Shown piece after piece: positions 5,620 to 51,963 of a stretch of 64,000 nucleotides of DNA. Position numbers and translations under genes: made by a program. Every line of letters starts with the position of its first letter. The stretch's first letter is position 1. The notes beneath the pieces were generated by a model. The model searched no databases. It was not told where the DNA came from and saw only the letters and a program-made list of their open reading frames with translations. The DNA is taken from sequence record PV796108.1; one strand, given 5' to 3'.

Positions 5620-5700
5620 ATAATTTGTTTTATAAGTTCTTTTATAAAATATAGAAGGACTTACAAACAAATTATAGGAAAATAGAGGAGGAAGTTTATT

Positions 5701-6815: not shown

Positions 6816-7667
6816 ATGCGTAAAGTAGTATATGGTTCAACAACAGTAGACATCGAGGACAACAACTTAACAGTACAGGACATTCGTGAGGTAATGTCTG
6901 AAACATACCCTGAGTTAGCAAATGCAACACACACTGAAGCTGATGGCGTTATTACATTTAAAGTCCAAGCTGGTACAAAAGGTGCGGTTCGTATTGTTAA
7001 GTATGGTTCAACAACAATCGACATCGAAGATGATGCTCTAACTGTAAATGATATCCGTGAAGTAATGGCGGAAACTTACCCTGAATTAGCCAATGCATCT
7101 CATACACAAGAGGGTAACGTAATCGAGTTCAAGGTACAAGCAGGAACAAAAGGAGCCGTACGAGTTGTTAAGTACGGTTCCACTTCAATTGATATCGAAG
7201 ACGATGCATTAACTGTCAACGATATTCGTGAGGTAATGGCTGAGACTTATCCTGAACTTGCTAACGCTTCACATACACAGGAAGGTAACGTAATCGAATT
7301 TAAAGTGCAAGCTGGTACGAAAGGTGCTGTCCGTGTTGTAAAATACGGTAGCACTTCTATCGACATTGAGGATGATGCATTGACTGTTAATGACATCCGT
7401 GAGGTAATGGCTGAGACTTATCCTGAGTTGGCTAATGCGTCTCATACTCAAGAAGGCAATGTTATTGAGTTCAAGGTGCAAGCTGGAACCAAAGGTGCTA
7501 CTCGTGTAGTAAAATATGGTTCTACTACAATTGATATCGAGGATGACGCTTTAACAGTTAACGACATTCGTGAAGTAATGGCTGAAACGTATCCAGAACT
7601 AGCAAATGCTTCTCACACTCAAGAGGGCAATGTGATCGAATTTAAAGTACAAGCAGGTACAAAAGGT
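6816..7667 (+). repeat. tandem coding repeat, 168 nt plus 4 x 171 nt
   Basis: units at 6816-6983, 6984-7154, 7155-7325, 7326-7496, 7497-7667; protein nearly identical, codons divergent. Confidence 0.95.
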
Positions 7668-7715
7668 GGTCTTGAGTTCTTCAAAGCTATTGCACCAAAA
7701 TTAAGAAAGAAGTAA
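6816..7715 (+). CDS. polyubiquitin-like precursor, 5 tandem PRTRC protein C-like Ubl units plus 15 aa tail
   Basis: RBS AAAGGGAG before ATG 6816; units contain YPEL and end in GTKG, as recalled for PRTRC protein C; next to E2/JAB/E1. Confidence 0.85.
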   Translation: MRKVVYGSTTVDIEDNNLTVQDIREVMSETYPELANATHTEADGVITFKVQAGTKGAVRIVKYGSTTIDIEDDALTVNDIREVMAETYPELANASHTQEGNVIEFKVQAGTKGAVRVVKYGSTSIDIEDDALTVNDIREVMAETYPELANASHTQEGNVIEFKVQAGTKGAVRVVKYGSTSIDIEDDALTVNDIREVMAETYPELANASHTQEGNVIEFKVQAGTKGATRVVKYGSTTIDIEDDALTVNDIREVMAETYPELANASHTQEGNVIEFKVQAGTKGGLEFFKAIAPKLRKK

Positions 7716-7722
7716 TATGAAT

Positions 7723-7755
7723 GGGATGGAGGCCTTGGGCTTTCATCCCTTTTTT
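7723..7755 (+). terminator. intrinsic terminator after polyUbl gene
   Basis: GGGATG...CATCCC plus T tract. Confidence 0.65.
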
Positions 7756-7795
7756 CGGTGTAATTATATTTGTATTATTAAAAGGAGGTAATTGT

Positions 7796-8170
7796 ATGAG
7801 TCAAGAAGCTACAGATTTACAAGTTTCATTGGAAAGTATTCTTACAGATGACGGTGAAGAAACAGTTCCAGCACCTGAAACAAGAAGTTCATGGGAGGTT
7901 GCAGGTTTTGGTGGTCTTGAGGCATTTGTTTGTGAGAGATTAGAAGCTTTACCAAACCAACCAATTGTTAATGGTACAGTGAAAGCTAATGTTGAAAGAA
8001 TTATGTCAGCAGAAAAGGTTGAGGATTTAAGTGATATCTCAACTGGTACTTTAGAAACAATTGTAGAAGAATTAAGACGTTCAGTTAATAGTCATTTAAG
8101 TCGTCTTGATGATTTTGCGCCTCGTGTTGGTCGTGCAATGCCAATTGAAAGAGAAAGTGACTTTATCTAA
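7796..8170 (+). CDS. hypothetical acidic protein in Ubl cassette
   Basis: RBS AAAGGAGG before ATG 7796, in frame with track ORF 7721. Confidence 0.75.
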   Translation: MSQEATDLQVSLESILTDDGEETVPAPETRSSWEVAGFGGLEAFVCERLEALPNQPIVNGTVKANVERIMSAEKVEDLSDISTGTLETIVEELRRSVNSHLSRLDDFAPRVGRAMPIERESDFI

Positions 8171-8184
8171 AGGAGGGAATTAAC

Positions 8185-9723
8185 TTGACGAACTTAGAAA
8201 CATTAAGAAATCGAGTTTCACATATTGTAACGTCTAGAAGACTGGTAGATGATGGTCTTATCAAGGAACATATCACAATTCCACAATCTGAAGTGGAAGA
8301 AGGTAAGATTGTTAGAGAAGTAGTTTTCGAAGCAATTAAAGATACATTCACTGGATGTCGTATTAATCCAAATAAACATTCGTTTTCAGTTAAATTGGAT
8401 GGTGCAATCAGTGTTAAAGCACAGGAGCTTTATGATTATATTCAAGAGCATCCACATTGGAAGTCTTTCTTAGAGTCACAGCATTCTAGCAAGTTACGTA
8501 CAATTTTAAATCTCTCAAATGTTTATCAAGAAAGGAGAGAATTAAAATATAAGAAAGAAGATGATGGGCGCCGTTTCATTTATGTACCATTTGAACCAAA
8601 GGACATTCCGAGTTATAACCAACAAGGTCTGTATTATATGCTTCAGTACTTATCTGAAAGTTTTAGTCGTGAACGTAGAGCTTCTGAGATTTTTGATGAA
8701 GTTATGCAATTGATTGAGACTGAACGTGAACGTCGTATCGAAGAACGTAACCGTTTAATGGCACGTATCGAAGCGAAGTACAAGGAAGATATCAAAGCAA
8801 GCTTGTTGAAACCCATCGGAGCGATTCAAGGAGATGTTCGTGAGAAACTTATCCAAGAACGTATGGTGAAATGGTGTAATGAGCAAGGTTTAGCACCAGC
8901 TATCCCTCAAGAGCTTACATATCAAAACATTATTCCAGTAGGTACAGAAGTATCTGTAGTTGTTAAGTCAGGTTCTCAAGAAGAAGGATGGTTTGCAGTT
9001 CCACGTTCTGGAGGATTTGATATTCCTGAAGGATTTGAACGTTTAATGGTTTATGATAATGTAACTCGTCACGATGCATTACACCAACGTTCTCGTAATG
9101 GTTCAGCTCCAATCGTAATCAATGAAGATACTTTCACTGAGTTTGACATTGCTTATTGGAATCATTTAATCCCAGCGGAACATGCTCAGTATAAAGCAGG
9201 TTATGAGGCTGTAGTTGCTTCTGTAACGGCTGCTGAAATTAAAGTAGTACAAGACTTACTTGATGAGCAAAAACGTGAGGAAGAGGCACGTATTCAACGT
9301 CAGAAGGAAGAGCTTGCACAACGACGTGAAGAATTAAGACGTCAACGTGAGCGTGAAGATGAAGAGTTACGTAATCTTGAACGTTCTTATGACAATGAAA
9401 ATGAACAAAAGCGTCAAGAAAGAAAACGTAGAAGCTTAGATGCGATTGCTCGTCAGTTACAAGAACAAGCTGAAACACATTCTGTACCAGAGGACGATGA
9501 TTTGTTTGAAGAGATTATCGAATCTGATTACAAACTCTTGTATAATCCATTTGGTGTAGATAGTAAGTTTACGTTAGTTCATCCAGATGGTGAGGAAGAA
9601 AACTTCTCAAGTGAAGATGATTTAAAGGTTCGTGTCTTTGAAGAATTAGAATTAGATGAACATGAAGCAGTTGTTTATCACAAAATTAATCAAAGTCGTG
9701 TGTACAAAGCTTTAGAAAAATAA
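8185..9723 (+). CDS. hypothetical coiled-coil protein occupying the PRTRC protein F position
   Basis: 512 aa, TTG start with RBS AAAGGGAGG, two charged coiled-coil stretches; assignment is positional only. Confidence 0.75.
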   Translation: MTNLETLRNRVSHIVTSRRLVDDGLIKEHITIPQSEVEEGKIVREVVFEAIKDTFTGCRINPNKHSFSVKLDGAISVKAQELYDYIQEHPHWKSFLESQHSSKLRTILNLSNVYQERRELKYKKEDDGRRFIYVPFEPKDIPSYNQQGLYYMLQYLSESFSRERRASEIFDEVMQLIETERERRIEERNRLMARIEAKYKEDIKASLLKPIGAIQGDVREKLIQERMVKWCNEQGLAPAIPQELTYQNIIPVGTEVSVVVKSGSQEEGWFAVPRSGGFDIPEGFERLMVYDNVTRHDALHQRSRNGSAPIVINEDTFTEFDIAYWNHLIPAEHAQYKAGYEAVVASVTAAEIKVVQDLLDEQKREEEARIQRQKEELAQRREELRRQREREDEELRNLERSYDNENEQKRQERKRRSLDAIARQLQEQAETHSVPEDDDLFEEIIESDYKLLYNPFGVDSKFTLVHPDGEEENFSSEDDLKVRVFEELELDEHEAVVYHKINQSRVYKALEK

Positions 9724-9753
9724 ACCGTTAGATAACTAAGGAGGAAATTTATT

Positions 9754-10479
9754 ATGGCAAACCGTCCAGATTCTATTAACATTGAGATTTTACAAGAGGG
9801 TGTTACAGTTAAAACAACGAAAGGTGGCGTAACATCTATCAAGGAAACAAATCTTGAGCAGATTCAACGTCAATTAACAAGCAATGAGCGTATTGAGACG
9901 CCGTTGCTTCCAAGTATTTGGGGTGTTCAAAAGTATGTAAAGCGTGGTAAACGTGAGCTTTATGTAATCACGACTCCTCCAGGGGTACGTAAAGTACAGT
10001 ATACTGGTGATGACCGTGGTGAGTATGAGATTCCTGTACCAGCAGCAGTTTGGTTTGTAACATCACAAGAACGTTCTGGTGGTGGACGTCAATTAGTTCA
10101 TACAACAGTTTATGCAATTAAAAATCCTATTTTAACAGGTATTGAACAATTGTATCGTATGCCATTTAGTAACTGCGATAACTCATACATTTGCTGGGGA
10201 GATGAGAGTCCACAAATTTCATCACCAAAAAGTATTCAATCTATTCCAGACCGTTTCTTTGGAATGCCTTTCAACAGTGATTTAGGAAGTAATGCGTATC
10301 AACCGATTAAAGAAGAGATTGATGGAAAAGAGATTAGTCACTTCCGTATCAATCATTTATTCCGTTACTTAGATCGTAAGTTGAAAGCAGACAAGGATTT
10401 CCGTTTCCCGAACAATCATTTAAACAGTTACGAGTCATTTAAACGTGTACTTGACCACGAGCTTCGTCGTTTATCTTAA
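9754..10479 (+). CDS. prokaryotic E2-like enzyme (Prok-E2_D / PRTRC protein B-like)
   Basis: TPLLP, IPVPAAVW, LYRMPFSNCDNSYICWGD (putative catalytic Cys in ICWG), FFGMPFNSDL. Confidence 0.8.
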   Translation: MANRPDSINIEILQEGVTVKTTKGGVTSIKETNLEQIQRQLTSNERIETPLLPSIWGVQKYVKRGKRELYVITTPPGVRKVQYTGDDRGEYEIPVPAAVWFVTSQERSGGGRQLVHTTVYAIKNPILTGIEQLYRMPFSNCDNSYICWGDESPQISSPKSIQSIPDRFFGMPFNSDLGSNAYQPIKEEIDGKEISHFRINHLFRYLDRKLKADKDFRFPNNHLNSYESFKRVLDHELRRLS

Positions 10480-10532
10480 TCTATATTTTGGTAGTTAATA
10501 AAAAAACAAACAATTAAAAGGAGAGATTTATT

Positions 10533-11912
10533 ATGACTAAAGCAGCAAAATCAAGCGCAATGGCGGCACTACGAGCAAAAATGGCAGGACAAACAATGGC
10601 ATATCACATGGGACCTCAAACAGCTGAGGTCTATGCACAAAAGCCAACAAACTATGTTACAGCAGGTAATGGTGTTTTCCGTGTTATCCAAAAGGATATC
10701 GGTGCTTTCGTAACAAAAGTTGCTGATGGTAAGATTCCAGGCTTCCCAGAGATGGAGGAAGGCGTACATTTACAAATTCCAAAGATTCCTTATAAGTATT
10801 GGTTACAAGTATTATCATTCTACAAAGATGTTAATGCGAAAGATGGTACTGAAGCATCTGTATTATTCTTCTGGAACACAAACAATGTAACATTACCAAC
10901 TCATTATGACCCAACGCCAGCACAAGCTGCAAAAGGTGAGTTAGGACCAGAAGTAAAAGGTTTAACACAAGATGGTCAATTAATCATTTATTGCCCAGTA
11001 CAAAAGAACTCTGGTAGTTTATCAGACTTCACGAAAGATTCATTTGTAGATTACTTACGTCTACATACAGCTCAGTTATGTGAAACACATTCTCATAATA
11101 CAATGGGAGCGTTCTGGTCAGGAACTGACGATAGCAATGAGAACTATCCACAGTTCTATGGTGTTATTGGTAAAGTTTCAAGCAAAGAACCTGAACATCG
11201 TTTCCGTTATGCATTAGGTAAAGAAAAATTTGATTGCGAACTATGGGAATTATTCGAAAAGCCTAAAGTTCAAAAGATGGAAATTGTAACAATCGACATT
11301 CCAGGTGTTGGCACTGTTGAAGATGTACAAGAAATTAAAAATCTTGACTTTAAAGGTCCATGGCCGATGGTTGATTATCCAAGTGATTGGATGGGTCAAC
11401 ATAGTAAAAGTTACTACACTCCCAGTTACGGCACAGCCTATACTCGTAAAACCTACGGTACAGGTGGTACAGCAGTCCAAACCCACGGAGGTCAAGGTGG
11501 CGGAATCTTTCCCAGCTACGGACACTGGCCAGAAGAATGGGACACTCTTGGGGGCTGGGCTGACGCTGGCAATCAGTCTGGCCTTGGGTTGGCTGCGGAA
11601 GTAGCTGGCGAAGGAGACTATGGTTTCGGAGAAGGTACCAGGCAAGGGCAAGAATCTTTCAACGAAGCGTACAAAAAATTCTTACAAGAACCAGTCGAGG
11701 GCCAAGGGACGTGGACGTTCTCAAAAGCAAGGGAAAAGAAAGTAGCTGAAGGTCAGCTTGAAACTGATGGTACAGTAGTTGATTATGTAATCATGGAACC
11801 AACAGAAGCTGAAGAATGTGATGAGATTCATTCAATGATTGGTGAATTAATTAACTTTGGTGTTTATGCAACCATCGTTGATATTGCGAAAGAAGAACAT
11901 CTTGTAGAGTAG
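10533..11912 (+). CDS. JAB/MPN+ metalloprotease (PRTRC protein A-like) with long C-terminal extension
   Basis: E in GTEASVLFFW plus ETHSHNTMGAFWSGTDDSNE = JAMM E...HxH-x7-S-xx-D. Confidence 0.85.
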   Translation: MTKAAKSSAMAALRAKMAGQTMAYHMGPQTAEVYAQKPTNYVTAGNGVFRVIQKDIGAFVTKVADGKIPGFPEMEEGVHLQIPKIPYKYWLQVLSFYKDVNAKDGTEASVLFFWNTNNVTLPTHYDPTPAQAAKGELGPEVKGLTQDGQLIIYCPVQKNSGSLSDFTKDSFVDYLRLHTAQLCETHSHNTMGAFWSGTDDSNENYPQFYGVIGKVSSKEPEHRFRYALGKEKFDCELWELFEKPKVQKMEIVTIDIPGVGTVEDVQEIKNLDFKGPWPMVDYPSDWMGQHSKSYYTPSYGTAYTRKTYGTGGTAVQTHGGQGGGIFPSYGHWPEEWDTLGGWADAGNQSGLGLAAEVAGEGDYGFGEGTRQGQESFNEAYKKFLQEPVEGQGTWTFSKAREKKVAEGQLETDGTVVDYVIMEPTEAEECDEIHSMIGELINFGVYATIVDIAKEEHLVE

Positions 11913-11980
11913 GCATTAGCCTACTTTACATTTTTTTATTGCACTACATATCTTATTTATATTAAAAGGAGAGATTTATT

Positions 11981-12838
11981 ATGAAACTTGAAAAAACTTA
12001 TTCTTTAGATACTATGTACAGAACTGCTAAACATTTTATCGTAATTGGAGCTGGGGGTAACGGTGGTTATTTCATTCCACAATTAGCTCGTATGGTTTCT
12101 GTTCAAAATAAAATTCGTGAAGTACAACGTTTACCATTACACCGTATTACAATCATTGAAGCTGATGGAGTAGAAGCGAAGAATTTAACTCGTCAAAACT
12201 TTATTGCAGCTGATATTGATAAAAATAAAGGTGAAGTAATGGCTGCTCGTTATGCTCGTGCTTTTGGTCTTGAAATTGGATTAGTAGGGCAATATCTTGA
12301 TAGTCATGAGATGTTACTTAAAATTATGCGTGAAAGTACATCAAAAGAAGTACCAGTTATTTGTGGTATGGTAGACAACAATAAAACTCGTAAATTAATG
12401 CATGATGCATTTAAAGCATACTCAGGTGCATTCTATCTTGATGTAGGTAATGAAGAGTTTGCAGGACAATGTGTTCTTGGTTACAACCACAACAAAGATC
12501 GTTTTGTTTTACCAAGAGAAGGTGGAGATTCAATCCAAAGCTTTAGTTTACCAAGTGTTTGTGAAGTATTCCCAGAGGTAATGGAAGCGCAAGACAAATT
12601 ACCAACTGAAATGTCTTGTGCAGAACGTTCTGAGTCAGCTCCTCAAAATATTTATACAAACATGACAGCATCAAATGAAGCATTAGGATTTGTGAACCAT
12701 TTATTAACAGACAATGTAAATGGTTCAACACCAACTGGTTTACGTGTTCATACAACAATCTTTGATGCTAACACAATGAATAAAACAACTCGTTTTAATC
12801 GTACGAGTGAGCTTGAAAAATATGTGGCGGGGAAATAA
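11981..12838 (+). CDS. ThiF/E1-like activating enzyme (PRTRC ThiF-like)
   Basis: IGAGGNGG, NLTRQNF, VDNNKTR, LDVGN, SCAE...PQN..TN. Confidence 0.9.
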   Translation: MKLEKTYSLDTMYRTAKHFIVIGAGGNGGYFIPQLARMVSVQNKIREVQRLPLHRITIIEADGVEAKNLTRQNFIAADIDKNKGEVMAARYARAFGLEIGLVGQYLDSHEMLLKIMRESTSKEVPVICGMVDNNKTRKLMHDAFKAYSGAFYLDVGNEEFAGQCVLGYNHNKDRFVLPREGGDSIQSFSLPSVCEVFPEVMEAQDKLPTEMSCAERSESAPQNIYTNMTASNEALGFVNHLLTDNVNGSTPTGLRVHTTIFDANTMNKTTRFNRTSELEKYVAGK

Positions 12839-23367: not shown

Positions 23368-24135
23368 ATGGAAATGTCCCACCTACTAGTAATAGTAGTG
23401 TTGGAACTCTGTAAACTGCTGGGAGTCCTAAAGCTCTATCAACCAAAACAGAACCTGAATAAGGTATATGCGACAAAAGCCGTATATGGGGAAGCTTCTT
23501 AGAAAACTCTGTATACAAGTGCTTGTGATTGGGGAAGCTTCTCAGAAAACTCTGGTCACTGGTTTGAAAATGATAGAGATGTACAATGGGTAATCAGCAT
23601 CCAAGCTTCGTACGTTATGATAAGGAAGTGTTCTAAGTAGACAATATCATACGCTGTATCCTTTGCGATATGTAATCCCGTAAGTCTACATCTCGTCATG
23701 TAGTTGGTTTTCCCTCCAATGTGAGCCGTCAATGTGAGTGAACAGACCCAGTACTTTGAGTAATAGAAGAAGGTTCAACGACTATCGAAAGCGTAGCTTC
23801 TATGTGAATAGGAGTGAATAAGCGAGTAGAGTAGAATATATCAAACTAAAGTAACATTGGAGTCGGTCCCTATGCGGGAGGACGAAAGATGGCGCCCTAA
23901 AAAGCCTTCTGGTCTCCATGACTCAAATGATATATTCGAAGCGCAGAGTGCCCGACTGATCTTTATTATGCAGACTAAAGCTTGTTGAGGCTCAAATGTG
24001 TAAGAAAGAAGCAAGGGTAATGATATAGTCTAGTCCCGACTGTCTGAATCAAAACAATAAATTGATGAATAGCCGTAAGAGTGAGACCTAACAGCGACAG
24101 ACATGAGAAATATAGCGAAAGCTAGGGTATAAACG
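23368..24135 (+). ncRNA. group I intron 1 in dnaE (768 nt, no endonuclease ORF)
   Basis: exon ends in U, intron ends in G; P AAACTGCTGGGA 23413, Q AATCAGCATCC 23592, R GTTCAACGACTA 23773, S GATATAGTCT 24022; splicing restores PDVDTD/FDYERR in frame. Confidence 0.9.
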
Positions 24136-25147
24136 TTCGACTACGAAAGAAGGCATGAAGTAATTGATTATGTAACACGTAAATACGGAGCAGATAAAGT
24201 ATCTCAGATTGGTACATTCGGTACATTATCAACTCGTATGGCGTTAAAAGATATTGGTCGTGGATTAGGTATCGACCACAACATCATTAATGAAATGAAT
24301 AAACTAATTCCTGTACACCAAGGGAAAGTTGCTTCTATTGAAGATGCATTAAAACAAGTACCTGAATTACAAGAATATCAAACTATGTATCCTGAGCTAT
24401 TTGAGTTAGCTATGAAGGTAGAAAGTTTACCACGTACAAACTCAATCCATGCTTGCGGAATGGTTATTGCGCCAAAATCACTATATGGTTCCATCCCATT
24501 AATTAAAGGAAAAAATGGTGAGATTGTAACGCAATATGAAGGCCCGACACTAGAAAAACTAGGAATTATCAAGTTTGACTTCTTAGGATTAAAGAACTTA
24601 TCTGTAATTGATATTGCACGTAAGTTAGCAAAGGAACGTCATGGTGTTGACATTGACCCCGATGCATTAGAGCCAGAAGACCCTAAGGTATTTGCTACTA
24701 TACAACAAGGATTCACTGATGGATTATTCCAGATTGAATCTGAAGGAATGAAGAAGCTATTCCGTGGTATTAATAAGGTAGACTTTGAGACACTTATTGC
24801 AGGTGTAGCATTGTATCGTCCAGGTCCGATGGAGCATATTCCTGATTATCAAGCTAAGTCAAATGGATTAAAAGAAGTATCCTATCCACATGCTGACCTA
24901 GAACGTATCACAAAGAACACGTTCGGTATTGCTATTTATCAAGAACAAATCATGCAGATTACTGGACAGTTCGGTGGATATTCTCCAGGTAAACAAGATG
25001 GATTCCGTAAAGCAATTGGTAAAAAATCTCAAGAGGTTATGGACAAGGTATTACCTGAATTAAATCAAGATATCTTAGACCACAACTACTCTCATGAGAT
25101 TGCAGAATACATTATTAATATCATTAAACCATTCGTTGGTTATGGGT
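24136..25147 (+). CDS. dnaE: DNA polymerase III alpha, exon 2
   Basis: FDYERRHEV..., SIHACG, KFDFLGLKNL, FQIES, LYRPGP, YQEQIM; ends FVGYG. Confidence 0.95.
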
Positions 25148-25500
25148 TAACATACAGGCCCCGTTACACAGTGATGTGTAAATGAGAACTCCGAATATGC
25201 TGGGACGAACCTTAGAGCCTTTAGTACGAGCATATGCCGTAACAATCTAAAGGATTGGTCAATCAGCAGGGATAGACCTTTTTGCTGACATCAGCAATAT
25301 GGTAGGCCCCCAGAGACTACCAAGGAGTATCTTTATCTTTCTATAATGGAGAGTTTGATCCTACTGGCTCAGGTGTTTTTCACCTCCTTGTCAATGAATC
25401 AAATTAGCGGTTAGCTTTCGAGCTTTCCGTTATGGAAAGATGAAGATGATGGTATAGTCCACTCCCCTACTTAAATATCGGGAAACCGAGGGTTCGAAGG
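25148..25500 (+). ncRNA. group I intron 2 in dnaE (353 nt, no ORF)
   Basis: P1 GGGU/GCCC with U-G; P AATATGCTGGGA 25194, Q AATCAGCAGG 25261, R CAGAGACTA 25311, S GGTATAGTCC 25451; terminal G; splicing restores GYGFNRSHAACY. Confidence 0.92.
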
Positions 25501-26423
25501 TTAACCGTTCACATGCTGCTTGTTATGCATACATCTGTTATCAAACTGCATTCTTCAAAACACACTATCCAATTGAGTTTATGTGTGGATTACTAACTAT
25601 CTTTGGTGAAAACCAAGATAAATGTGTACAGTACATTGAAGAGTCTAAGCGTATGGGTATTAGCGTTCAACAGCCTGACATCAACTTCAGTGAGCGTGGA
25701 TTCTCTATTGATGGTAAGTCCCTTCGTTATGGACTAGCAAGCATCAAGGGGATGGGAGAAGCTGTAGTAGATAATATCTTAGCAGCACGACCATTCAGTT
25801 CACTTGAAGACCTTATCAAACGAGTACCAAAACGTATTATGAACAAACGTGTTATTAATGTTCTATGTCGTTCTGGAGCTTTGGATGGATTAGGTCATGA
25901 GCATAAGAACCGATTAGCAATCCTTCAGTATCTATATATGCTTCGTGGAGATAAAGACGACATCTCTTATGATGTATCTAAGTATGATAAACAAGCCATG
26001 TTGAAAGATGAGAAGGAATTGATTGGTGTTTATGTAAGCTCACATCCATTAGAAGGTATGTGTGAGAAGTTGAACTTAGATTACATTGCAGACAATGAAG
26101 TATTTGAAAATGCTGGCATCATAAGAAGCTTCAAGGAAATTCGAACAAAGAGTAGTAAGTTAATGGCAATGGTTAATCTCGAAACATTATCTGGTGAATT
26201 AAAACTTGTTGTATTCCCAGATGTGTATGAGAAACTAGATGTTCCATTACAAGATGGACTTATCGTTAAGTTCTCTGCTTACTTTAAGTTTAATTTCCAG
26301 TACAATGAACGTTCTTGTTTAGCCAAGAAGTTTACTGTACCAAAGCGGATTAATTCTCAGATACTGAAGAATCAAGTAGCAGAACCAAAAAATCTATTTG
26401 TCATTGAAAAACGTGAACAATAA
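25501..26423 (+). CDS. dnaE: DNA polymerase III alpha, exon 3
   Basis: FNRSHAACY, KTHYPIEF, PDINFS, YGLASIKGMG, SSHPL, C-terminal OB fold. Confidence 0.95.
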
Positions 26424-33718: not shown

Positions 33719-35215
33719 ATGAAAAAGTTTGGAGCAATAGCTTCGGCTATCGCACTCTCTGCTAGCTTGTTCTCATTTGCGAACACTTCAAGTGCAGAGG
33801 AAGTCACTGTAGGTACAGGGTTTTCGGTAGGTAATCAGTATGAAAATGGTGGTTATGAAGCAGAAGCGTTTCAACCAGTAACAGAAGCATGGAGCTTTAA
33901 CTCTCGTTTCGTGGGAGCGAACACAAGTGAATTGCATTCTAAGTATGAACCACTTAATAAGGTAAACATTTTGCAAACTATCTTAGATAAAGATGGTACG
34001 TACTACACAATCGAAAGTGGCAAAGGTAATAACCCAGCGATTGTTGCTTATTCTAAAGACAGTATTAAGCAATGGTCTTACACACCACCACGAGGCGCAC
34101 AGAATTTAGTATTAGGCAATGATAACAAATTATACTTCCGTGATATGACAAACTTGTATTCTGTAGATAAAGCGTCTGGTAAGTTATTATGGACTGTAGA
34201 AATTCCATCAACAGGTACTTCACCTGGCAACTTCCCAAGTGTATCTATTGATAAAGATGGCACTATCTACACAAATGGTTTAAATGAAATTTCAGCAGTT
34301 ACTCCAAATGGTGAGATTAAATGGACTCGATACATCAATCAAAACATTACTTCATTCATCAAGATTGATAAAGAAGGTCGATTAATCTTCATCACTGGTA
34401 CAAAAGTACGTGCTTATGACAAAGATGGTAATGAAATTTGGAGTAAGTACATTGAGAACGATAAAGTAGGTAACATCGAATTATTAGAAAACGATGAGCT
34501 TTTAGTTTCAACAAACAAATCCAATCCTGAGCTTACCATTTTAAATCGTTCAACAGGTAAACCAGTAAAAGTAATGCCAATGACTTCTACACCACGTAGT
34601 GTTACTGTATCAGATGTTGACGGTTCTATTTATGTAGCTGGTGATGAATTAAAGATTTACGACAAACAGTTCAACTTAAAAACAATTATCGCTAAGAAAG
34701 TAAACCATGTATTATTAGACAAAGACAACAACGCATTCTTCAGTATTGATAACGATGGTGTATACTCTGTTAACCCTGAAGGTACTGAACGTTGGGTTTA
34801 CAAGCCAGACAATGCTACTCATAACTGGACTTCTAATCTAGCAATGGATAAAGAAGGTAAAGTATATGCGGGCTTACGTGAAACAGTTGGGACAGTAAAT
34901 GAATTTTCTATGGTTGTATTAGGTGCTAACATTGATAAAGCTTGTCAACGTGTGAGTGTTGTATTAAACTCTCAACTTAACAAGAATGTTCCTGACTATG
35001 CACACAAAGCAACTCCATTTTACAATGCAAGTGTATGTGACACTACATTCACATTCCAATTTGAAAGCAGCGATCCATCTATCTTAAATGATAAAGACAA
35101 GCATATTGCAGAAGCAAAAGCTCGTTTAGCTAATACAGGTGACTTTGCTAACAAAGTTAAGTTTATCTGGAAAGATGTAAAAACAAATCAAGTATTCCAT
35201 GAACAAGTACAATAA
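33719..35215 (+). CDS. secreted PQQ-like beta-propeller protein
   Basis: signal peptide ending SSA-EE; repeated DKDG.IY / G..KW motifs. Confidence 0.8.
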   Translation: MKKFGAIASAIALSASLFSFANTSSAEEVTVGTGFSVGNQYENGGYEAEAFQPVTEAWSFNSRFVGANTSELHSKYEPLNKVNILQTILDKDGTYYTIESGKGNNPAIVAYSKDSIKQWSYTPPRGAQNLVLGNDNKLYFRDMTNLYSVDKASGKLLWTVEIPSTGTSPGNFPSVSIDKDGTIYTNGLNEISAVTPNGEIKWTRYINQNITSFIKIDKEGRLIFITGTKVRAYDKDGNEIWSKYIENDKVGNIELLENDELLVSTNKSNPELTILNRSTGKPVKVMPMTSTPRSVTVSDVDGSIYVAGDELKIYDKQFNLKTIIAKKVNHVLLDKDNNAFFSIDNDGVYSVNPEGTERWVYKPDNATHNWTSNLAMDKEGKVYAGLRETVGTVNEFSMVVLGANIDKACQRVSVVLNSQLNKNVPDYAHKATPFYNASVCDTTFTFQFESSDPSILNDKDKHIAEAKARLANTGDFANKVKFIWKDVKTNQVFHEQVQ

Positions 35216-40343: not shown

Positions 40344-40364
40344 AAAGGGAGGTATTCGCCTCCC

Positions 40365-40688
40365 CTACTTTTCTAATTTATATGTAATTACTTCACCTGG
40401 TTCTTCTTTACGATTCCAACCCGCCCAACGTCTACTTCCACCTGAACCTTTCTTCTTCATATTTCTACCACCTGTTATATTAGGAGATAGAACTTCTTTA
40501 AATACTGGAGCTTTCTTTCCTGCTTCCTCTTTCGCTTTACGTTCTGCTCTTAGTTGAGCTAACTTTTCTTGCTTATACATCTTCTTTATTTCTTTCTTAT
40601 TTTTACCATGTTCTTTACGATTCTTTTCTTTCCTTCTTTTCCTTTCTTCTTCCTCCATCATCTTGAGTAATGCATCTTTATTCTTCAT
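40365..40688 (-). CDS. Lys/Glu-rich basic protein, only convincing minus-strand gene
   Basis: 107 aa, RBS AAGGGG, convergent with 40343 across a GGGAGG...CCTCCC hairpin. Confidence 0.7.
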   Translation of the reverse strand: MKNKDALLKMMEEEERKRRKEKNRKEHGKNKKEIKKMYKQEKLAQLRAERKAKEEAGKKAPVFKEVLSPNITGGRNMKKKGSGGSRRWAGWNRKEEPGEVITYKLEK

Positions 40689-40699
40689 GTCACTTAACC

Positions 40700-41245
40700 C
40701 CCTTATTGCTATGTGCTATTGTATCCTAAAAACATACCCGATGGGTAGAGAATGTTACTATAAGTAAGCAGACGTATCCCATCGAGTAAGTCTACTTTTA
40801 GCAGTATAGTCAGTGATGTTTACAAGTAGGGACATATGACTCATACCACACCGTTCATAATCATACCTCTATATCCACCACAAATATACAGATATAAATA
40901 CGAACGCACAAAGCACCTTCATTATAACACCGATAAATCGGAACAATCTTTCTACAAGCACATCGCTAGTCTACCTTGCTTGCTAATCTGATTGTCTACC
41001 CTGAGCAAACGTTACTAAGCTCATAGCGACCCACCCCCTGATACGTCTTTTATTGGTTAATTCCAAAAGGCATTGCAACAGGATTGCTTCCTTTATAGTC
41101 ACGTACACATATGAAGGTAAAGTGTTTACACGCAACTACCAGATTCCTTTGGATTTCATCCATACGATGGCTCTGGTAAACCTGTCAAGTTTAACGTGTT
41201 AGTTGGTAATTCCACGCCAGTACAGTGGCATTAATCGTACTGGAT
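40700..41245. ncRNA. ORF-free structured region, candidate ncRNA or long leader of the minus-strand gene
   Basis: about 600 nt without ORF; stems 41217-41243, 41137-41178, 40739-40784. Confidence 0.35.
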
Positions 41246-41353
41246 TATATTCAGTTGTTATATGTAAAAACAAAGTGGTTTGTTTAGCACTACTTATTGT
41301 ATATCGTTTTTTCTTGTATTACAATACCTTTTATGAAAGGAGTGGAAATAAAA

Positions 41354-45996: not shown

Positions 45997-46050
45997 TAAA
46001 GAGAATGAGGTGCTACTTCGGTAGTACCTCTTATTTTTGGGGAGAGTATT

Positions 46051-46287
46051 ATGCCAGCTTTTAAAACGATTTTGAGGGGAAATAACTTACTGGTTCTATT
46101 AAAAAGAGTACAGGAGTTAGAAGCAAAAGGATATGAGTGCGCTCATCCCATCCAGAGGCAAGAGAGGCACAAAGTTTATGCTGATGGATATGAACAATCA
46201 AAAAAGGCTTACACAAAACATGAGGATGTTTATTTCACTCGTTACTTTGTACAAATGATTAAGAAGGAAAAGGAAGGTGTATCCTAA
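46051..46287 (+). CDS. hypothetical protein
   Basis: 78 aa, RBS GGGGAG. Confidence 0.65.
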   Translation: MPAFKTILRGNNLLVLLKRVQELEAKGYECAHPIQRQERHKVYADGYEQSKKAYTKHEDVYFTRYFVQMIKKEKEGVS

Positions 46288-46628
46288 TGTATAACAAAGA
46301 TGTTAAACCGTTTCACCATATCTCAGCGTACCATGTTGTATATACGTTTATGGAATTAGCTTGGGATGAAGCAGAACCAAATGGTTATTTACGAGACATG
46401 TATCAAACTACGTTATTAGATTGGTATCATGATTTGAAAGATGAAGTAGCTATGTCTTCAGCTCATTCTGCTTTTGAAGATTTCTACAACAATAATGATG
46501 TGGAAAGAGATCAGTTGGATGAATTCAAATCACAATTAGAAATCTTATGTGATAAGATAATTAGGAATTGGAAACAACGAGATGAAGTTATCCAGTTTAT
46601 TATTGATGGATACAAGGAGGAGTATTGA
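46287..46628 (+). CDS. hypothetical protein
   Basis: TAATG coupling. Confidence 0.7.
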   Translation: MYNKDVKPFHHISAYHVVYTFMELAWDEAEPNGYLRDMYQTTLLDWYHDLKDEVAMSSAHSAFEDFYNNNDVERDQLDEFKSQLEILCDKIIRNWKQRDEVIQFIIDGYKEEY

Positions 46629-46907
46629 TTGGTTAAATTCCCTTTAGGTCAAACAGTTATGACACAAGGTGTTAACATGCTTATGGAAGAAGGTAGTATT
46701 GAAAGAACAGATGTAAACAAGATGTTTATAAGCCATGCAACAGGTGAGTGGGGAGAACTTACCAAAGCAGATGCGAAGATGAATGAGAAAGCTATTGAAG
46801 ATGGTGACCGCATTCTATCTAAATATACAAAGAATGGTTATGAGTTCTATGTAATTACAGAAGCAGACCGTTCCGTAACAACAGTGTTACTTACAGATGA
46901 ATATTAA
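46629..46907 (+). CDS. conserved mobile-element hypothetical protein
   Basis: FPLGQ.V.T, H..GEWG, ITEADRSVTTVLL.DEY pattern common in plasmids and phages. Confidence 0.75.
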   Translation: MVKFPLGQTVMTQGVNMLMEEGSIERTDVNKMFISHATGEWGELTKADAKMNEKAIEDGDRILSKYTKNGYEFYVITEADRSVTTVLLTDEY

Positions 46908-46964
46908 TGGTTGAGTTTTACTTTCATCTAAAGTAACATATTGGTAAGAAAGGGAGAGGGGAAT

Positions 46965-47180
46965 ATGAAATACATAAGGCAATTATATGCACTCTTTGCT
47001 GGGGCAATAGCCATTGGCATCTTACTGCTCTTCGCATATATCCTTTCATTTTTTGAACATGGATATGTCGTTATTTACGTAATCATTGGTGCATTATGTT
47101 GTTTATTAATAGGCAATATGGCTTTAGATATTGCTGAAGATATAAAAAAGGCAAGGCAAAAAAGGAGAGAAGCGAAATGA
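46965..47180 (+). CDS. small membrane protein
   Basis: two TM segments, RBS GGGAGAGG. Confidence 0.65.
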   Translation: MKYIRQLYALFAGAIAIGILLLFAYILSFFEHGYVVIYVIIGALCCLLIGNMALDIAEDIKKARQKRREAK

Positions 47181-47485
47181 ATAAACGTATCTTTAGAAAG
47201 AAAACAAAATGGGAAGAACCACAATGTCCAATCTGTCATGGTGAAATTGATTTTGTGCAAGATAATCCTGATGTAACATCTGCATGTATTAAATGTAAGA
47301 ATGTAACATATGGTCATCCAACTGATGAAACTATGGTAATTACAATTAATGGTCGTCCATATCTTATTGACGATAACTTAGATGAAAAATCATGGAGAGT
47401 AGAAGTCAGCAAGTATGAAAAAGTAGTAAATCAATTACGTAAGTTTTATCAACGTAGTGGAGGGATTCGCCGTGTACGTTCCTGA
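47177..47485 (+). CDS. Zn-ribbon protein
   Basis: CPIC and CIKC motifs. Confidence 0.65.
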   Translation: MNKRIFRKKTKWEEPQCPICHGEIDFVQDNPDVTSACIKCKNVTYGHPTDETMVITINGRPYLIDDNLDEKSWRVEVSKYEKVVNQLRKFYQRSGGIRRVRS

Positions 47486-47993
47486 TATTTGGGTAACAAG
47501 TGATACCCACCACGGTCATAAAAACATTTTGAAGTTTGAACCAAGCCGTAAGTGGGACAACACAGATGATATGGATGAAGCACTGATTCAGCGTTGGAAC
47601 TCTAAAGTTAAAAAGAATGACATCATCTTTCATGTAGGTGATGTTTTCTTATGTGGAGCAAAACGTGCTGAGTATATTGCTAGCCGTTTACATGGTCGCA
47701 AGATATTAATCTTAGGTAACCATGATAGCTTCAGTAAAAAGAAGTACAGAGATATGGGATTTGATGTTCATAACTATTATTTCTATGAAGACTTTCTATT
47801 AAGCCATTATCCACAGGATGATAGATTGCTATTACAAGCACAGCAGTATGGATTACGTGGCAACATTTGTGGTCATGTACATTCCAACATCGAAGGATTA
47901 AATCCCGATGTTCATTTTTGTGCTTGTGTAGAGAATCATGATTTCTATCCTGTTCATATAGATACAATCAAACAAAGTTTCAAGGGGGAGTAA
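47457..47993 (+). CDS. calcineurin-like metallophosphoesterase
   Basis: SDTHHGH, HVGD, LGNHD, SHYP, GHVH; start may be GTG near 47474. Confidence 0.9.
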   Translation: MEGFAVYVPDIWVTSDTHHGHKNILKFEPSRKWDNTDDMDEALIQRWNSKVKKNDIIFHVGDVFLCGAKRAEYIASRLHGRKILILGNHDSFSKKKYRDMGFDVHNYYFYEDFLLSHYPQDDRLLLQAQQYGLRGNICGHVHSNIEGLNPDVHFCACVENHDFYPVHIDTIKQSFKGE

Positions 47994-47996
47994 GTT

Positions 47997-48329
47997 ATGT
48001 CTGATGAGAAACAAACCTCAGGTGTAGGTTGTATGTACACTGTACTAGCGACCTTATTGATTCCTGTTGCCATGATGACAAATGGCTTGGCTTTAATGTG
48101 GGCATGGAATTGGTTAGCTGTTCCAACTTTTGATGTGCCAACACTTAGTTATTTACAAGCAGTTATTATCAACTTCTTATTATTGTTTGTTCGTAAAGGA
48201 ACACCATCGAACAACAAAATGGAAACGGACGAAGATCTTGTTCGTTCCTTCAAACAAATATTAGGGAAGGTATTCTTAGTACCAATCTTTAATATTGTTC
48301 TTGCACTTGTTTTAAAATTATTTATTTAA
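47997..48329 (+). CDS. membrane protein
   Basis: multiple hydrophobic segments. Confidence 0.7.
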   Translation: MSDEKQTSGVGCMYTVLATLLIPVAMMTNGLALMWAWNWLAVPTFDVPTLSYLQAVIINFLLLFVRKGTPSNNKMETDEDLVRSFKQILGKVFLVPIFNIVLALVLKLFI

Positions 48330-48349
48330 TTAAAAAGGGGATATGTAAA

Positions 48350-48598
48350 ATGGCAATCGAAGTAATCAAGTATTCAAAACCAAATTGTGGACCATGTATA
48401 TTAGTAGGAAACTTCTTGGAAGAACATGATGTAAAGCATGTAGAGAAAGATATCTATGAGCACACAGAAGAGTATCAAAAGCTAGGAGTATTCGGTTCTC
48501 CAATCACTGTAGCTTATAAAGACGGAGAGCAAGTATTCTTATCTGCTGGTTTTAAAGAAAATGAGTTAGAGAAACTTGTAGTTTTAGTAAACGAATAG
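48350..48598 (+). CDS. nrdH: NrdH/glutaredoxin-like redoxin
   Basis: YSKPNCGPC active site, P in GSPIT, 82 aa. Confidence 0.8.
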   Translation: MAIEVIKYSKPNCGPCILVGNFLEEHDVKHVEKDIYEHTEEYQKLGVFGSPITVAYKDGEQVFLSAGFKENELEKLVVLVNE

Positions 48599-48611
48599 GG
48601 GGTCATGTGAC

Positions 48612-49298
48612 ATGACAGTATTGGCGATACTTTTCATCATAACAGTATTTGCTTGTCTTTACTTAATGGTTGGTGGCTTATCAAAAGATCAAAAAGTAAG
48701 AGAAGTAAAAAACAAGCTTCGTCGAATTGAATCGGAGCATGAAAAAGAAATCAAAGATTTAAAAACAAAGCATGACAAAGAAATTGATAAACGTAACGAG
48801 ATTATAGATGAAGTCATGGCAAGAGCTGCTGACAAGATTCGTAGTCTTGGTGCAATTGTTGATAAAAAACAAGGCAGAGGTTCTGCTCATGAAATCGTGA
48901 CAGAACGCATTCATTTCAGCGAGAATCGTGAAGATATTTCATATCGAGTTATGTATGATGCATTCGCAAAACAACTGGATAAGAAACCTGAACAACCAAA
49001 ACCAGTTCAAATGAAGAAACATGTAACATCATTTGGTGGCTGGAGTGGTGGAGGCGGTTCTTCATCATCTTCATCAAGTTCTAGCTCAAGCTCCAGACGT
49101 TCTGGAAGTAGTTCATCTTCTCGTTCTTCTAGCTCAAGCAGTTATGATTACAGTTCACCATCTTATTCTTCATATGATAGTGACAGTAGTTCTTCTTATA
49201 GCTCAGGTGGTAGCTGTAGTTCTAGCTCAAGTTCAAGTAGCTATGATTCAAGTTCTAGTTCAAGTGATTCATCAGGAGGCTACGGTGGCTGCGATTGA
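48612..49298 (+). CDS. membrane-anchored coiled-coil protein with Ser-rich tail
   Basis: N-terminal TM; about 85 aa S/G/Y/D tail ending GGYGGCD. Confidence 0.8.
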   Translation: MTVLAILFIITVFACLYLMVGGLSKDQKVREVKNKLRRIESEHEKEIKDLKTKHDKEIDKRNEIIDEVMARAADKIRSLGAIVDKKQGRGSAHEIVTERIHFSENREDISYRVMYDAFAKQLDKKPEQPKPVQMKKHVTSFGGWSGGGGSSSSSSSSSSSSRRSGSSSSSRSSSSSSYDYSSPSYSSYDSDSSSSYSSGGSCSSSSSSSSYDSSSSSSDSSGGYGGCD

Positions 49299-49353
49299 TA
49301 GGGGGTATCTTACCCCCTCCCAGCTTTACCGTCATCCAAGAGATACTATCACG

Positions 49354-49557
49354 ATGCGTGACTATGCAGATAATATCCAACCTTTAATAGTTGATTATGC
49401 ATATGACTCATATGATAAGATTCTGACTGAAGAGATGAAAAAATATATGGAACAACTCCACAAACAACTATATAGCAGTATTATGGATGGGTATAGTGAC
49501 AATCCTTCTAATAAGAAAACTGTTAAACGTATGAAACAGGAGGTTGAGGTTTCATGA
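49354..49557 (+). CDS. hypothetical protein, C-terminal tag, possible tail-tube-like fragment
   Basis: starts RDYADNIQPL; ends SNKKTVKRMKQEVEVS; start uncertain. Confidence 0.55.
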   Translation: MRDYADNIQPLIVDYAYDSYDKILTEEMKKYMEQLHKQLYSSIMDGYSDNPSNKKTVKRMKQEVEVS

Positions 49558-50054
49558 CGACATTTAGAGGTGCTGATATTATTGCTACATTTAATGACCA
49601 AGTAATTGGGGCATTAAACGAAATGGATTTTTCAGTATCCAGAGAAGATAGTTCTATTTATACTATAGGTGCTGCACCTGGGCATCATTCTTTTTCAAGA
49701 GGAATGACATTAGATAGAGTTGTACATGAAGATGCACGAGAAGATATTAGAAGGCAACTTGCAGAGAGTTATGGAGTAGATAATGATATTCCTTTTTATC
49801 AGTGGGCAAGAGCAACACGATTATCTATGCGTCATGGTAGAAGAGGATATCCTGATATCAGTCTACAAGTAGACAGTATTGATTATAGTATCATGTACCC
49901 TGCTACTTTCAGTGTTGTTAAAAGTAAAGCACAGGATTTTAAAAGATTTATTCGTCCAATTGAAATGGATGAAAGTAAGTTCAAATATGTTGATACTAGT
50001 AACTCCGTTAGAAGCTGGAAGCTTAATCGAGAGGAGGAAGTTTATTATGACTAG
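49554..50054 (+). CDS. tail-tube N-terminus-like fragment, C-terminal tag
   Basis: TFRGADIIATFNDQVIGAL..M.FSVSRE...IYTIG...SFSRG; ends SNSVRSWKLNREEEVYYD. Confidence 0.5.
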   Translation: MTTFRGADIIATFNDQVIGALNEMDFSVSREDSSIYTIGAAPGHHSFSRGMTLDRVVHEDAREDIRRQLAESYGVDNDIPFYQWARATRLSMRHGRRGYPDISLQVDSIDYSIMYPATFSVVKSKAQDFKRFIRPIEMDESKFKYVDTSNSVRSWKLNREEEVYYD

Positions 50055-50358
50055 CGATTATGCGAAACTTTCAAACTCAAGAATAACTGAAGAAGCAGTT
50101 AGGTTAATACGAGAAGCTTGTGCTCCATATACTGGACAACCAATTAATCAAAACAAACGAAGCATGGCAGATGCTATGGCTCGTTCACTACAAAAATTCT
50201 TTACAGATGATTGGAAAGTAGAAGTTGCTGAAGATGGCATGGGGACATTTACATATTTGAAACCCATTACGGTAACAACAGCAACGATTGATATGCGACA
50301 TGTTCTTAACAACAACTTCTTTGTAGATAAAATGAAAGAAGAAACTGCATATGATTAA
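50047..50358 (+). CDS. tail-sheath C-terminal-domain-like fragment, C-terminal tag
   Basis: SDYAKLSNSRITEEAVRLIREACAPYTGQP; ends NNNFFVDKMKEETAYD. Confidence 0.5.
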   Translation: MTSDYAKLSNSRITEEAVRLIREACAPYTGQPINQNKRSMADAMARSLQKFFTDDWKVEVAEDGMGTFTYLKPITVTTATIDMRHVLNNNFFVDKMKEETAYD

Positions 50359-50656
50359 TTACTCAGATATGATTAATCGAGAAATGCAAACAATCTCAGC
50401 AACGTTTGAAAGCCGAGAAGATAGAGAACAAACTGTTCAATATATGAATCAACTCATTAGAAGTAAATTATCTAGTATGAAAGAAGGAACAATCGTAAAT
50501 GGTATCAAGTGTGAGCAAGGTAATGATGGGAGATTTAAATTAAATATAAATTTCTATGTACCAGCTCCATTAGATAAAATCAATGTAAAGATTGGTACTC
50601 CTAATACGAATCAATTTAATGTAAATACATTGAAGCACGAAGCCTCTTGCGATTAA
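50351..50656 (+). CDS. possible sheath C-terminal-like fragment, C-terminal tag
   Basis: helix-helix then FKLNINFYVPAPLDKINVKI; ends TNQFNVNTLKHEASCD. Confidence 0.45.
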   Translation: MINYSDMINREMQTISATFESREDREQTVQYMNQLIRSKLSSMKEGTIVNGIKCEQGNDGRFKLNINFYVPAPLDKINVKIGTPNTNQFNVNTLKHEASCD

Positions 50657-50690
50657 GTAAGGGGCTTTTTTTATGAAAGGAGGTGAGTTA

Positions 50691-51420: not shown

Positions 51421-51963
51421 ATGGCAATTTCAACAACAACAATCGTGGGGCGTTTAACAAAAGACCCAGAATTAGAAATGAAACAAATCAATGGAGACAG
51501 TGTAGCCTTTACTAAATTTACTGTAGCAGTAGATGAGTACAATAGTGATGCTGACTTCTACAATGTAGTAGCATGGAGAAAACAAGCGGAGAACGCAGCG
51601 AAGTTCCTTGCGAAAGGTAGAGAAGTAGCTGTAACTGGTCGCATGAAAATGAAAAGCTACACGAAAAATGTGAATGGACAAGAGGTATACATCCCAGCTC
51701 CAGAATTACGTGCAGCAGACATTCAGTTCCTTGGTGGACGTCAAGAGAATTCTCAAGGCGGAAATGCTAATGGACAACAACAACGCCAACAACGTCCAGC
51801 TAATCAAGGCAACCGTGGTGGTCAACAAAGCAACTACCGTGGAAACCAAGGACAAAACTCTGGTTATAGCAATCAGAATCAAAACACAGGCCCAGTACCA
51901 GGTCAAAACAATACTGGTGGCGGAAGCCCTTGGGGAATGAGTGACGACGACCTACCGTTCTAA
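51421..51963 (+). CDS. ssb: single-stranded DNA-binding protein
   Basis: IVGRLTKDPEL, DFYNVVAWRKQAE, KGREVAVTGR, Q/G-rich linker, DDDLPF tail. Confidence 0.95.
   Translation: MAISTTTIVGRLTKDPELEMKQINGDSVAFTKFTVAVDEYNSDADFYNVVAWRKQAENAAKFLAKGREVAVTGRMKMKSYTKNVNGQEVYIPAPELRAADIQFLGGRQENSQGGNANGQQQRQQRPANQGNRGGQQSNYRGNQGQNSGYSNQNQNTGPVPGQNNTGGGSPWGMSDDDLPF

Follow-up and report, generated by a model that had tools for sequence, protein, structure and literature searches.

Why would a giant phage keep, a long way from its tail genes, small genes that resemble pieces of its own tail tube and tail sheath? The question is raised by four consecutive plus-strand genes, here called A to D, in Bacillus phage Edson, which infects B. 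cereus and has a genome of 233,813 bp (PV796108.1). All four are annotated as 'hypothetical', and neighbours are joined by start/stop overlaps. The 64-kb stretch analyzed here, the window, is the final part of the record (positions 169814–233813, 100% identity), and a window coordinate is the record coordinate minus 169,813; positions are those of the window unless they are given as record positions. An initial annotation had read the open reading frame (ORF) starting at 49554 (B) as the N-terminus of a tail-tube protein and the one at 50047 (C) as a tail-sheath C-terminal domain, with two further pieces suspected at 49354 (A) and 50351 (D), and the residues it quoted from the frames at 49554 and 50047 are present. 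On the evidence of homology, B and C (and perhaps D) arose long ago as partial copies of genes from this phage's own tail and have been retained as functional genes.

The likeness of B to a tube N-terminus is recovered by several kinds of sequence comparison. Residues 2–50 of B match residues 11–59 of the phage's own major tube protein, GAKEdson_0980, with 55% identity over 49 amino acids (aa) (tblastn against its own genome, E=6e-11). A hidden Markov model (HMM) built from five B orthologues finds GAKEdson_0980 at E=8e-15 and a second tube paralogue at 5e-4, hhalign pairs B with the tube at 99.2%, and the first ~51 residues match the N-terminus of the PHROG family phrog_9206 at E=1.8e-6. Residues 1–51 retain all residues that are invariant across the tube family in that stretch, and B is without the 10–24-residue N-terminal extension seen in real tubes. 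The PHROGs label of phrog_9206 is 'major head protein'. Its members in Edson (GAKEdson_0980, 0970 and 0960) lie directly downstream of the sheath gene, the annotations of phages 0305phi8-36 and KLEB27-3 call their members tail tube and tail-tube paralogues, and that of 0305phi8-36 (ORF140) rests on virion mass spectrometry.

Past this segment the resemblance ends. The conserved C-terminal two-thirds of the tube family, a fold of ~190 aa, is absent from B, with hhalign confident over residues 1–51 only. MAFFT and hhalign do extend the tube alignment along B, but with near-zero confidence after residue 51. An exhaustive HMMER scan of 1.84 billion representative proteins returned 11 non-orthologous matches to B, all confined to residues 2–51/59, and zero matches to residues 60–166 outside the orthologues. 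We considered B as a complete, diverged tube paralogue and rejected this, because alignment confidence is ~0 past residue 51 and no tube match reaches beyond residue 59. B does not belong to the tube family: the C-terminal two-thirds, the location and the neighbourhood all fail to fit. L015, a more distant relative, has a separate gene, X, also tagged, that the orphan part of B weakly resembles (P=0.012). The AlphaFold2 model of B (15 sequences) has a mean predicted local distance difference test score (pLDDT) of 55.9, with ~40 in the tube segment and a disordered tag; residues 50–95 are predicted to form a small alpha/beta unit (pLDDT 76–85). Foldseek of this model against the PDB gave nothing significant (best E=0.84). 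Sequence searches of the PDB using B, C and the Edson tube as queries gave no credible match, and a weak hit of B residues 48–130 to the TFIIE-alpha winged helix had E=0.025.

Gene C corresponds to the other partner of the tail machine, as had been proposed. It matches the phage's own sheath, GAKEdson_0990, at E=1.6e-7 (tblastn) and E=9e-7 (HMM), and hhalign against 60 sheath C-termini covers the entire length of C at 97.0% (E=1.9e-10). The PHROG family phrog_16991, 'tail sheath', is matched at E=9e-6 over positions 676–727, near the family's C-terminal end. GAKEdson_0990 itself, at 525 aa, matches phrog_16991 at E=8e-60 and carries Phage_sheath_1C at residues 427–521. In a multiple alignment, C from residue 2 to the start of its tag aligns with the final ~95 sheath residues, and the tag occupies the position of the sheath's own C-terminal end; the N-terminal and middle domains of the sheath are absent from C (103 aa). 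No Pfam family, Phage_sheath_1C included, matched C at the cut-off, DUF2586 stayed below threshold at E=8.6e-4, and GPW_gp25 gave no match for C or D at E<=1. On these alignments, C is a domain-level homologue of the sheath and not a sheath. Its AlphaFold2 model (31-sequence alignment; mean pLDDT 56.5) shows two helices followed by three strands and had no significant Foldseek match in the PDB (best E=0.46).

When both tail profiles, tube and sheath, were compared with the 127 small plus-strand ORFs of the region (254 comparisons), B (P=6e-14) and C (P=2.6e-10) were the only ones to stand apart from the rest; D came third (P=0.0026) and the next was at 0.013. Comparison with the phage's own tail genes, the check proposed at the outset, thus ties B and C to GAKEdson_0980 and GAKEdson_0990. 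For D the idea of a further piece survives in part. As a single sequence it ranks third of 254, where ~0.7 such matches are expected by chance, and its family profile matches the sheath C-domain collinearly and from the same starting column as C (hhalign P=4e-4, probability 14.9%), a weak, suggestive match; the D and C profiles compared directly give P=0.45. It is possible, judging from these profiles, that D is a second, more diverged copy of the sheath C-domain. Gene A as a tail piece was dropped, with no support from tblastn, HMM or hhalign: hhalign gave P=0.29 against the sheath C-domain and P=0.62 against the tube, and the best matches among Edson structural proteins were at E=0.87 (tblastn) and E=0.18 (HMM). 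The start of A is ambiguous, either GTG at 49285 (AGGAGG 5 nucleotides (nt) upstream, a strong ribosome-binding site) or ATG at 49354; four of five substitutions in the 5′ extension are synonymous, but there is a conserved hairpin there. This 8-bp hairpin in the annotated extension (49285–49357) is kept in five genomes, and one change preserves pairing as G–U.

The claim that the block lies far from the morphogenesis module is also correct. The Edson tube and sheath genes are at record 109.4–111.6 kb on the opposite strand, ~108 kb from the A–D block at record 219.1–220.5 kb. The tube paralogues sit beside the sheath (record 107.9–109.9 kb), and gene B is at 219.4 kb on the other strand; the Edson lineage has two sheath and three tube paralogues. 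A–D are the 3′-most genes of a probable transcription unit downstream of nrdIEF and upstream of ssb-recA. The terminator-like hairpin at 50639–50675 is the strongest of the region and overlaps the last codons of D, so that part of the C-terminal conservation of D may be an RNA constraint. Promoter scans of the region gave nothing usable for timing. Directly upstream, a gene at 48612–49298 overlaps the start of A; its product (228 aa) has a membrane helix at the N-terminus, a stretch of charged helix and a long tail rich in Ser, and its last residues are kept even in the distant L015.

The block is intact and syntenic in Edson, phage WH1 and three assemblies (L012, L013 and L014). Among 50,697 phage records, vB_BceM_WH1 is the sole relative at the DNA level, with 75.6% identity over the block. 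Pairwise ratios of non-synonymous to synonymous substitution rates (dN/dS) for A–D range from 0.08 to 0.36 (gene A 0.15–0.28, gene C 0.12–0.17, the tube segment of B 0.26–0.31), and by this measure A–D are under purifying selection. The last 36 codons of B have a dN/dS of 0.08–0.10 at a synonymous rate (dS) of 0.7–1.0; this C-terminus is therefore conserved as protein and not as DNA. Pseudogene remnants were considered as an explanation of A–D and rejected because of the intact frames and the dN/dS values. Between Edson and WH1, B and D are each 60% identical, A 78% and C 83%, compared with 92–97% for neighbouring enzymes and near-identity for the tube itself. B and C are absent from 0305phi8-36, KLEB27-3 and Moorella MTATph1, all of the same tail type. 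A–D are accessory and fast-evolving genes. L015, a 229-kb contig, preserves the same nrdF ... ssb-recA-SIR2 context with the gene order A, a 97-aa B (P0074) with little beyond tube segment and tag, an extra tagged gene (107 aa) weakly like the second half of B, and an orthologue of C (hhalign 97.7%). This part of L015 (4698–5587) has no positional orthologue of D. Sheath homologues (P0056–P0062; ~54% identical in the C-domain) also occur on ~237–239-kb contigs of B. cereus group genomes, which suggests that resident jumbo-phage relatives are common in this host group. A literature search found nothing on WH1, on the A–D genes or on a tag of the kind described next.

All four genes end in the same kind of peptide, as the initial annotation had noticed. 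We surveyed 127 plus-strand ORFs of 60–260 aa (record 148–221 kb), 47 of which have a hydrophobic–Lys/Asn/Arg–x–Glu/Asp motif 3–5 residues from the C-terminus (background 0.57 per position elsewhere). The tag was defined as C-terminal with a Glu anchor, Asn at −10, Met or Leu at −3, Lys, Asn or Arg at −2 and 3–6 residues past the Glu (see table for frequencies). A–D all match this pattern, Asn at −10 included. In B the pattern varies, Asn standing at −2 and six residues following the Glu, which places this tag among the 11 of 49 in which Asn or Arg replaces the Lys. The tag is 15–17 residues long. About 50 small proteins carry it; they fall into at least nine paralogue families without mutual relationship, besides singletons, and are encoded at record 148.8–220.5 kb and at record 5653–6168. 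Besides B and C, the tagged proteins that could be related to anything include a single ubiquitin-like (Ubl) domain homologous to the repeats of a poly-Ubl gene; ten representatives of other tagged families had no Pfam or PHROG match, and all-against-all phmmer of the tagged proteins returned sheath and Ubl links only. The next gene's ribosome-binding site overlaps the Lys-x-Glu codons in 13 of the 35 tagged window genes, A and B included, and falls outside the motif in ~20. Several tagged genes have a downstream spacer of 100–1010 nt, and D is followed by the terminator-like hairpin. Since the tag is found on at least nine unrelated families, ahead of such spacers and with its Asn at −10, it is a modular element that acts at the protein level and is restricted to this phage clade. 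The tag as an in-frame Shine-Dalgarno sequence was rejected, because the ribosome-binding site is mostly elsewhere and the Asn at −10 is left unexplained. Between the tagged gene arrays lies a gene for a 498-aa PQQ_2/BamB-type beta-propeller protein (33719–35215), a candidate peptide-binding protein.

What could tagged fragments of tube and sheath do? In contractile tails, contacts between subunits are made by the N-terminal hairpin of the tube and the C-terminal domain of the sheath. A host STAND sensor, Avs16, is reported to bind the conserved beta-hairpin of tail-tube proteins (PMC13581612). From the subunit contacts in the retained pieces and the binding of a tube hairpin by Avs16, we therefore favor soluble mimics of conserved tail-subunit surfaces that serve as decoys for host tail-protein sensors, with the tag docking them to a shared partner; we give this a probability of roughly 35%. 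By analogy with known tails, the retained pieces would be the conserved surfaces that contact neighbouring tube or sheath subunits, and they would also be the parts that a host sensor of tail proteins could recognize. B and C, if made alongside the replication genes as their neighbourhood suggests, would appear ahead of the accumulation of tail protein and could occupy host factors that recognize tube or sheath, as decoys or sponges. The tag they share is predicted to be disordered and may dock these proteins to a partner common to all tagged proteins.

Several observations support such mimics. Only the conserved N-terminal segment of the tube was kept, with every family-invariant residue, and B of L015 is reduced to that segment and the tag. 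The genes are accessory and evolve fast, as is usual for host-interaction genes; they neighbour nrd, ssb and recA and run on the opposite strand to the tail module, and their tag is modular and acts at the protein level. Other considerations weigh against it. Known sensors are activated by target binding, so a mimic must bind without activating, and we know of no tube- or sheath-sensing defence in B. cereus hosts. The expression time of A–D is read from gene neighbourhood only. The structure predictions are poor (mean pLDDT ~56 for B and C) and leave a parent-like fold unsupported, with the tube segment of B predicted to be unstructured on its own. Moreover, a role in assembling the phage's own tails would agree with these same facts.

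That role is the main rival to the decoys, and we consider it a tentative but serious one: B and C would mimic subunit interfaces in order to cap tube or sheath monomers until baseplates are ready, or to end polymerization. The retained parts come from polymerizing subunits, it is Edson's own major tube and sheath that they resemble, the tag of C is located where the sheath C-terminal end lies, and the tube and sheath paralogues indicate that tail-gene duplication is common in the lineage. Such an assembly factor would nonetheless be encoded among replication genes, on the opposite strand and ~108 kb away from the tail genes; it is missing from relatives of the same tail architecture, and B and D evolve much faster than the near-invariant tube that they must fit. 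It is somewhat doubtful that the homology is historical only, the tail pieces having been reused as material for small proteins with a function unrelated to tails. Two-thirds of B match nothing, the gene is split into two tagged genes in L015, ten other tagged families have no recognizable match, and the tube segment is predicted to be unstructured alone, all of which such reuse would accommodate; it accounts less well for a tube segment that keeps all invariant residues at a dN/dS of 0.26–0.31, or for two, possibly three, adjacent genes derived from two partner proteins of one machine, which is unlikely if the choice was random.

Two further explanations are less probable. The first connects the block with a Ubl cassette, which had been reported in this window and is present: a PRTRC-like set of E1, E2, JAB and poly-Ubl genes, for which PRTRC is the best-named family (NCBIfam TIGR03735/6/8), 37–43 kb upstream of A–D. 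According to this idea, the main proposal of the initial annotation, which we regard as improbable, the fragments co-assemble with and poison the tails of competing phages, or the tag lets the Ubl system mark the proteins they bind. Two tagged paralogues lie directly 3′ of the E1 gene (an SPFH protein also follows the cassette), one tagged protein is a single Ubl domain, and the related ~237-kb elements of B. cereus group genomes could be competitors. A Lys at −2 preceded by Met or Leu is found in 38 of 49 tags; hydrophobic-Lys-x-Glu is the SUMO conjugation acceptor motif, which the context of the tag Lys resembles. Set against this are the replacement of that Lys by Asn or Arg in 11 of 49 tags, that of gene B included, and the distance to the cassette. 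KLEB27-3 also has a Ubl cassette, with 0 strict tags in 70 small ORFs over the 50 kb around it and without B or C, which weakens the link between tag and Ubl. The tube segment of B is no closer to foreign tubes (44–57% identity) than to Edson's own (55%), so nothing in it is specific to rival phages and the phage's own tails would be hit too. The Gly-containing tail of the Ubl repeats is unlike the tag, and the tag as a Ubl C-terminal tail was rejected on that ground. The 82-aa tagged protein encoded at record 151120–151368 consists of a single Ubl domain homologous to the poly-Ubl repeats, with the tag in place of the Gly-containing repeat end. The second explanation, that these are not real features at all but decaying pseudogenes, or a Shine-Dalgarno sequence of the next gene read in frame, we hold to be extremely unlikely. 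The overlap of ribosome-binding site and Lys-x-Glu codons in 13 of 35 genes would fit it, but the frames are intact in six genomes with dN/dS of 0.08–0.36, the site lies outside the motif in ~20 of 35 genes, long spacers or, after D, a terminator follow some of them, and no ribosome-binding site explains an Asn at −10 in 45 of 49 tags.

Small early genes of giant phages mostly defy interpretation; for B, C and possibly D, an origin in particular parts of the tail machine can be recognized. The block is thus a handle on how phages deal with host factors, or with their own subunits, that recognize conserved tail surfaces, as well as on the purpose of a genome-wide peptide tag on phage proteins. 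If the decoy reading is true, B and C would turn a piece of the immunity-triggering protein itself into a counter-measure; to our knowledge, no described counter-measure is a fragment of its own immune trigger. Nor do we know of any described phage gene that is a tagged tail-protein fragment encoded outside the tail module, and a literature search found none. More speculatively, and with low confidence, the ~50 tagged proteins could form one bait-plus-handle system in which variable domains bind targets and the tag hands them to a shared reader. The part of reader could fall to the PRTRC-like Ubl machinery, the beta-propeller protein in the tagged arrays, a protease or the procapsid. Under that scheme, and no more probably than the scheme itself, B and C would be the first decipherable baits, and baits could be cut from the phage's own proteins. 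The tagged single-Ubl-domain protein fits the pattern as a third case.

The features of the block, the tag and the Ubl cassette are collected in the table.

Table. Positions in the window of genes A–D, their parts and tags, the surrounding transcription unit and the Ubl cassette, with residue frequencies at the main tag positions.
Feature	Position	Strand	Description
Gene A (GAKEdson_2830)	49285..49557	+	90 aa, tagged; tail homology not detected
Gene B (GAKEdson_2840)	49554..50054	+	166 aa; tube-derived N-terminal segment, orphan middle, tag
Tube-like segment of B	49554..49706	+	residues 1–51
Orphan part of B	49707..50000	+	residues 52–149; relatives not found beyond this phage clade
Gene C (GAKEdson_2850)	50047..50358	+	103 aa; free-standing sheath C-terminal domain (by homology) and tag
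Gene D (GAKEdson_2860)	50351..50656	+	101 aa, tagged; possibly second, diverged sheath C-domain copy
Tag of gene A	49510..49554	+	last 15 residues, from conserved Asn
Tag of gene B	50001..50051	+	last 17 residues; identical in five close genomes despite dS 0.7–1.0
Tag of gene C	50311..50355	+	
Tag of gene D	50609..50653	+	no overlapping downstream gene
Tag position −10			Asn, 45/49 (anchor = acidic residue, position 0)
Tag position −6			Leu/Val/Ile, 34/49
Tag position −3			Met/Leu, 40/49
Tag position −2			Lys, 38/49
Tag position 0			Glu, 41/49
Probable transcription unit containing A–D	46051..50656	+	terminator-like hairpins at both ends (46007-46030 and 50639-50668); between nrdIEF and ssb-recA
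Terminator-like hairpin, upstream boundary of unit	46007-46030		
Terminator-like hairpin with T run	50639..50675	+	12 pairs, top scorer of scanned region; ends unit
PRTRC-like Ubl cassette	6816..12838	+	five-repeat Ubl, E2-like, JAB-like and ThiF E1 genes
Poly-Ubl gene	6816-7715		five tandem 57-aa Ubl repeats
E2-like gene (Prok-E2_D)	9754-10479		
JAB/PRTRC_A-like gene	10533-11912		weak match
ThiF E1 gene	11981-12838		

Elsewhere in the genome a few further observations were made. A stretch of ~1 kb (40344–41353) has hardly any plus-strand coding and contains the sole minus-strand gene of the area (40365–40688), with bidirectional terminator-like hairpins on both sides. DNA polymerase III alpha (22078–26423) is spread over three ORFs (PHP+NTPase; NTPase+finger; HhH+OB) separated by non-coding stretches of ~735 and ~395 nt; in KLEB27-3 an HNH endonuclease gene lies inside the split polymerase gene. 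The 701-aa product of a gene at record 146362–148467 has an acidic C-terminal motif resembling an SSB tail, Asp-Asp-Leu-Pro-Phe, an ending similar to that of the phage's own SSB (51421–51963).

It is useful to set these genes beside systems that are already known. The tubes of the 0305phi8-36 type (phrog_9206; ORF140, KLEB27-3 gp026-028 and GAKEdson_0960-0980) share the family's N-terminal motif with B, whereas B is without their N-terminal extension, C-terminal two-thirds or adjacent sheath gene, is tagged and evolves far faster than the tube. The C-terminal domain of tail sheaths (Phage_sheath_1C; phrog_16991) aligns with C over the last ~95 sheath residues, but C has 103 aa against 525, a tag replaces its C-terminal end and it is encoded outside the tail module. 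The gp25/TssE-type sheath initiators are small baseplate proteins that resemble the inner domain of the sheath, and their genes are ancient and belong to baseplate modules. C is similar in being a small free-standing protein like a sheath domain, and the idea of engaging neighbouring sheath subunits is common to both; it differs in lacking a GPW_gp25 match and in being a recognizable copy of its own lineage's sheath. For the tag alone, shared targeting peptides such as the capsid-targeting sequences of T4 internal proteins and the cargo-loading peptides of encapsulins offer an analogy, since they too are short terminal peptides that many unrelated small proteins of one system share; in sequence they are unrelated to the tag, and entry of the tagged proteins into the virion is unsupported here. 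Bil-type bacterial systems conjugate Ubl to phage tail proteins, and the Edson genome likewise holds both an E1/E2/JAB/Ubl set and tail-related proteins. In contrast to Bil, the Edson cassette is phage-borne, of PRTRC type and distant from the block, and its KLEB27-3 counterpart is tag-free in the 50 kb examined. The nearest parallel to the reading favored here is sensing by Avs16 and DSR2. DSR2 is activated by a tail-tube protein and blocked by the phage protein DSAD1. In those systems, as proposed for Edson, a conserved tube element acts as the immune trigger, and phages encode small proteins directed against the sensor. B and C would be fragments of the trigger itself, unlike the counter-measures known to us.

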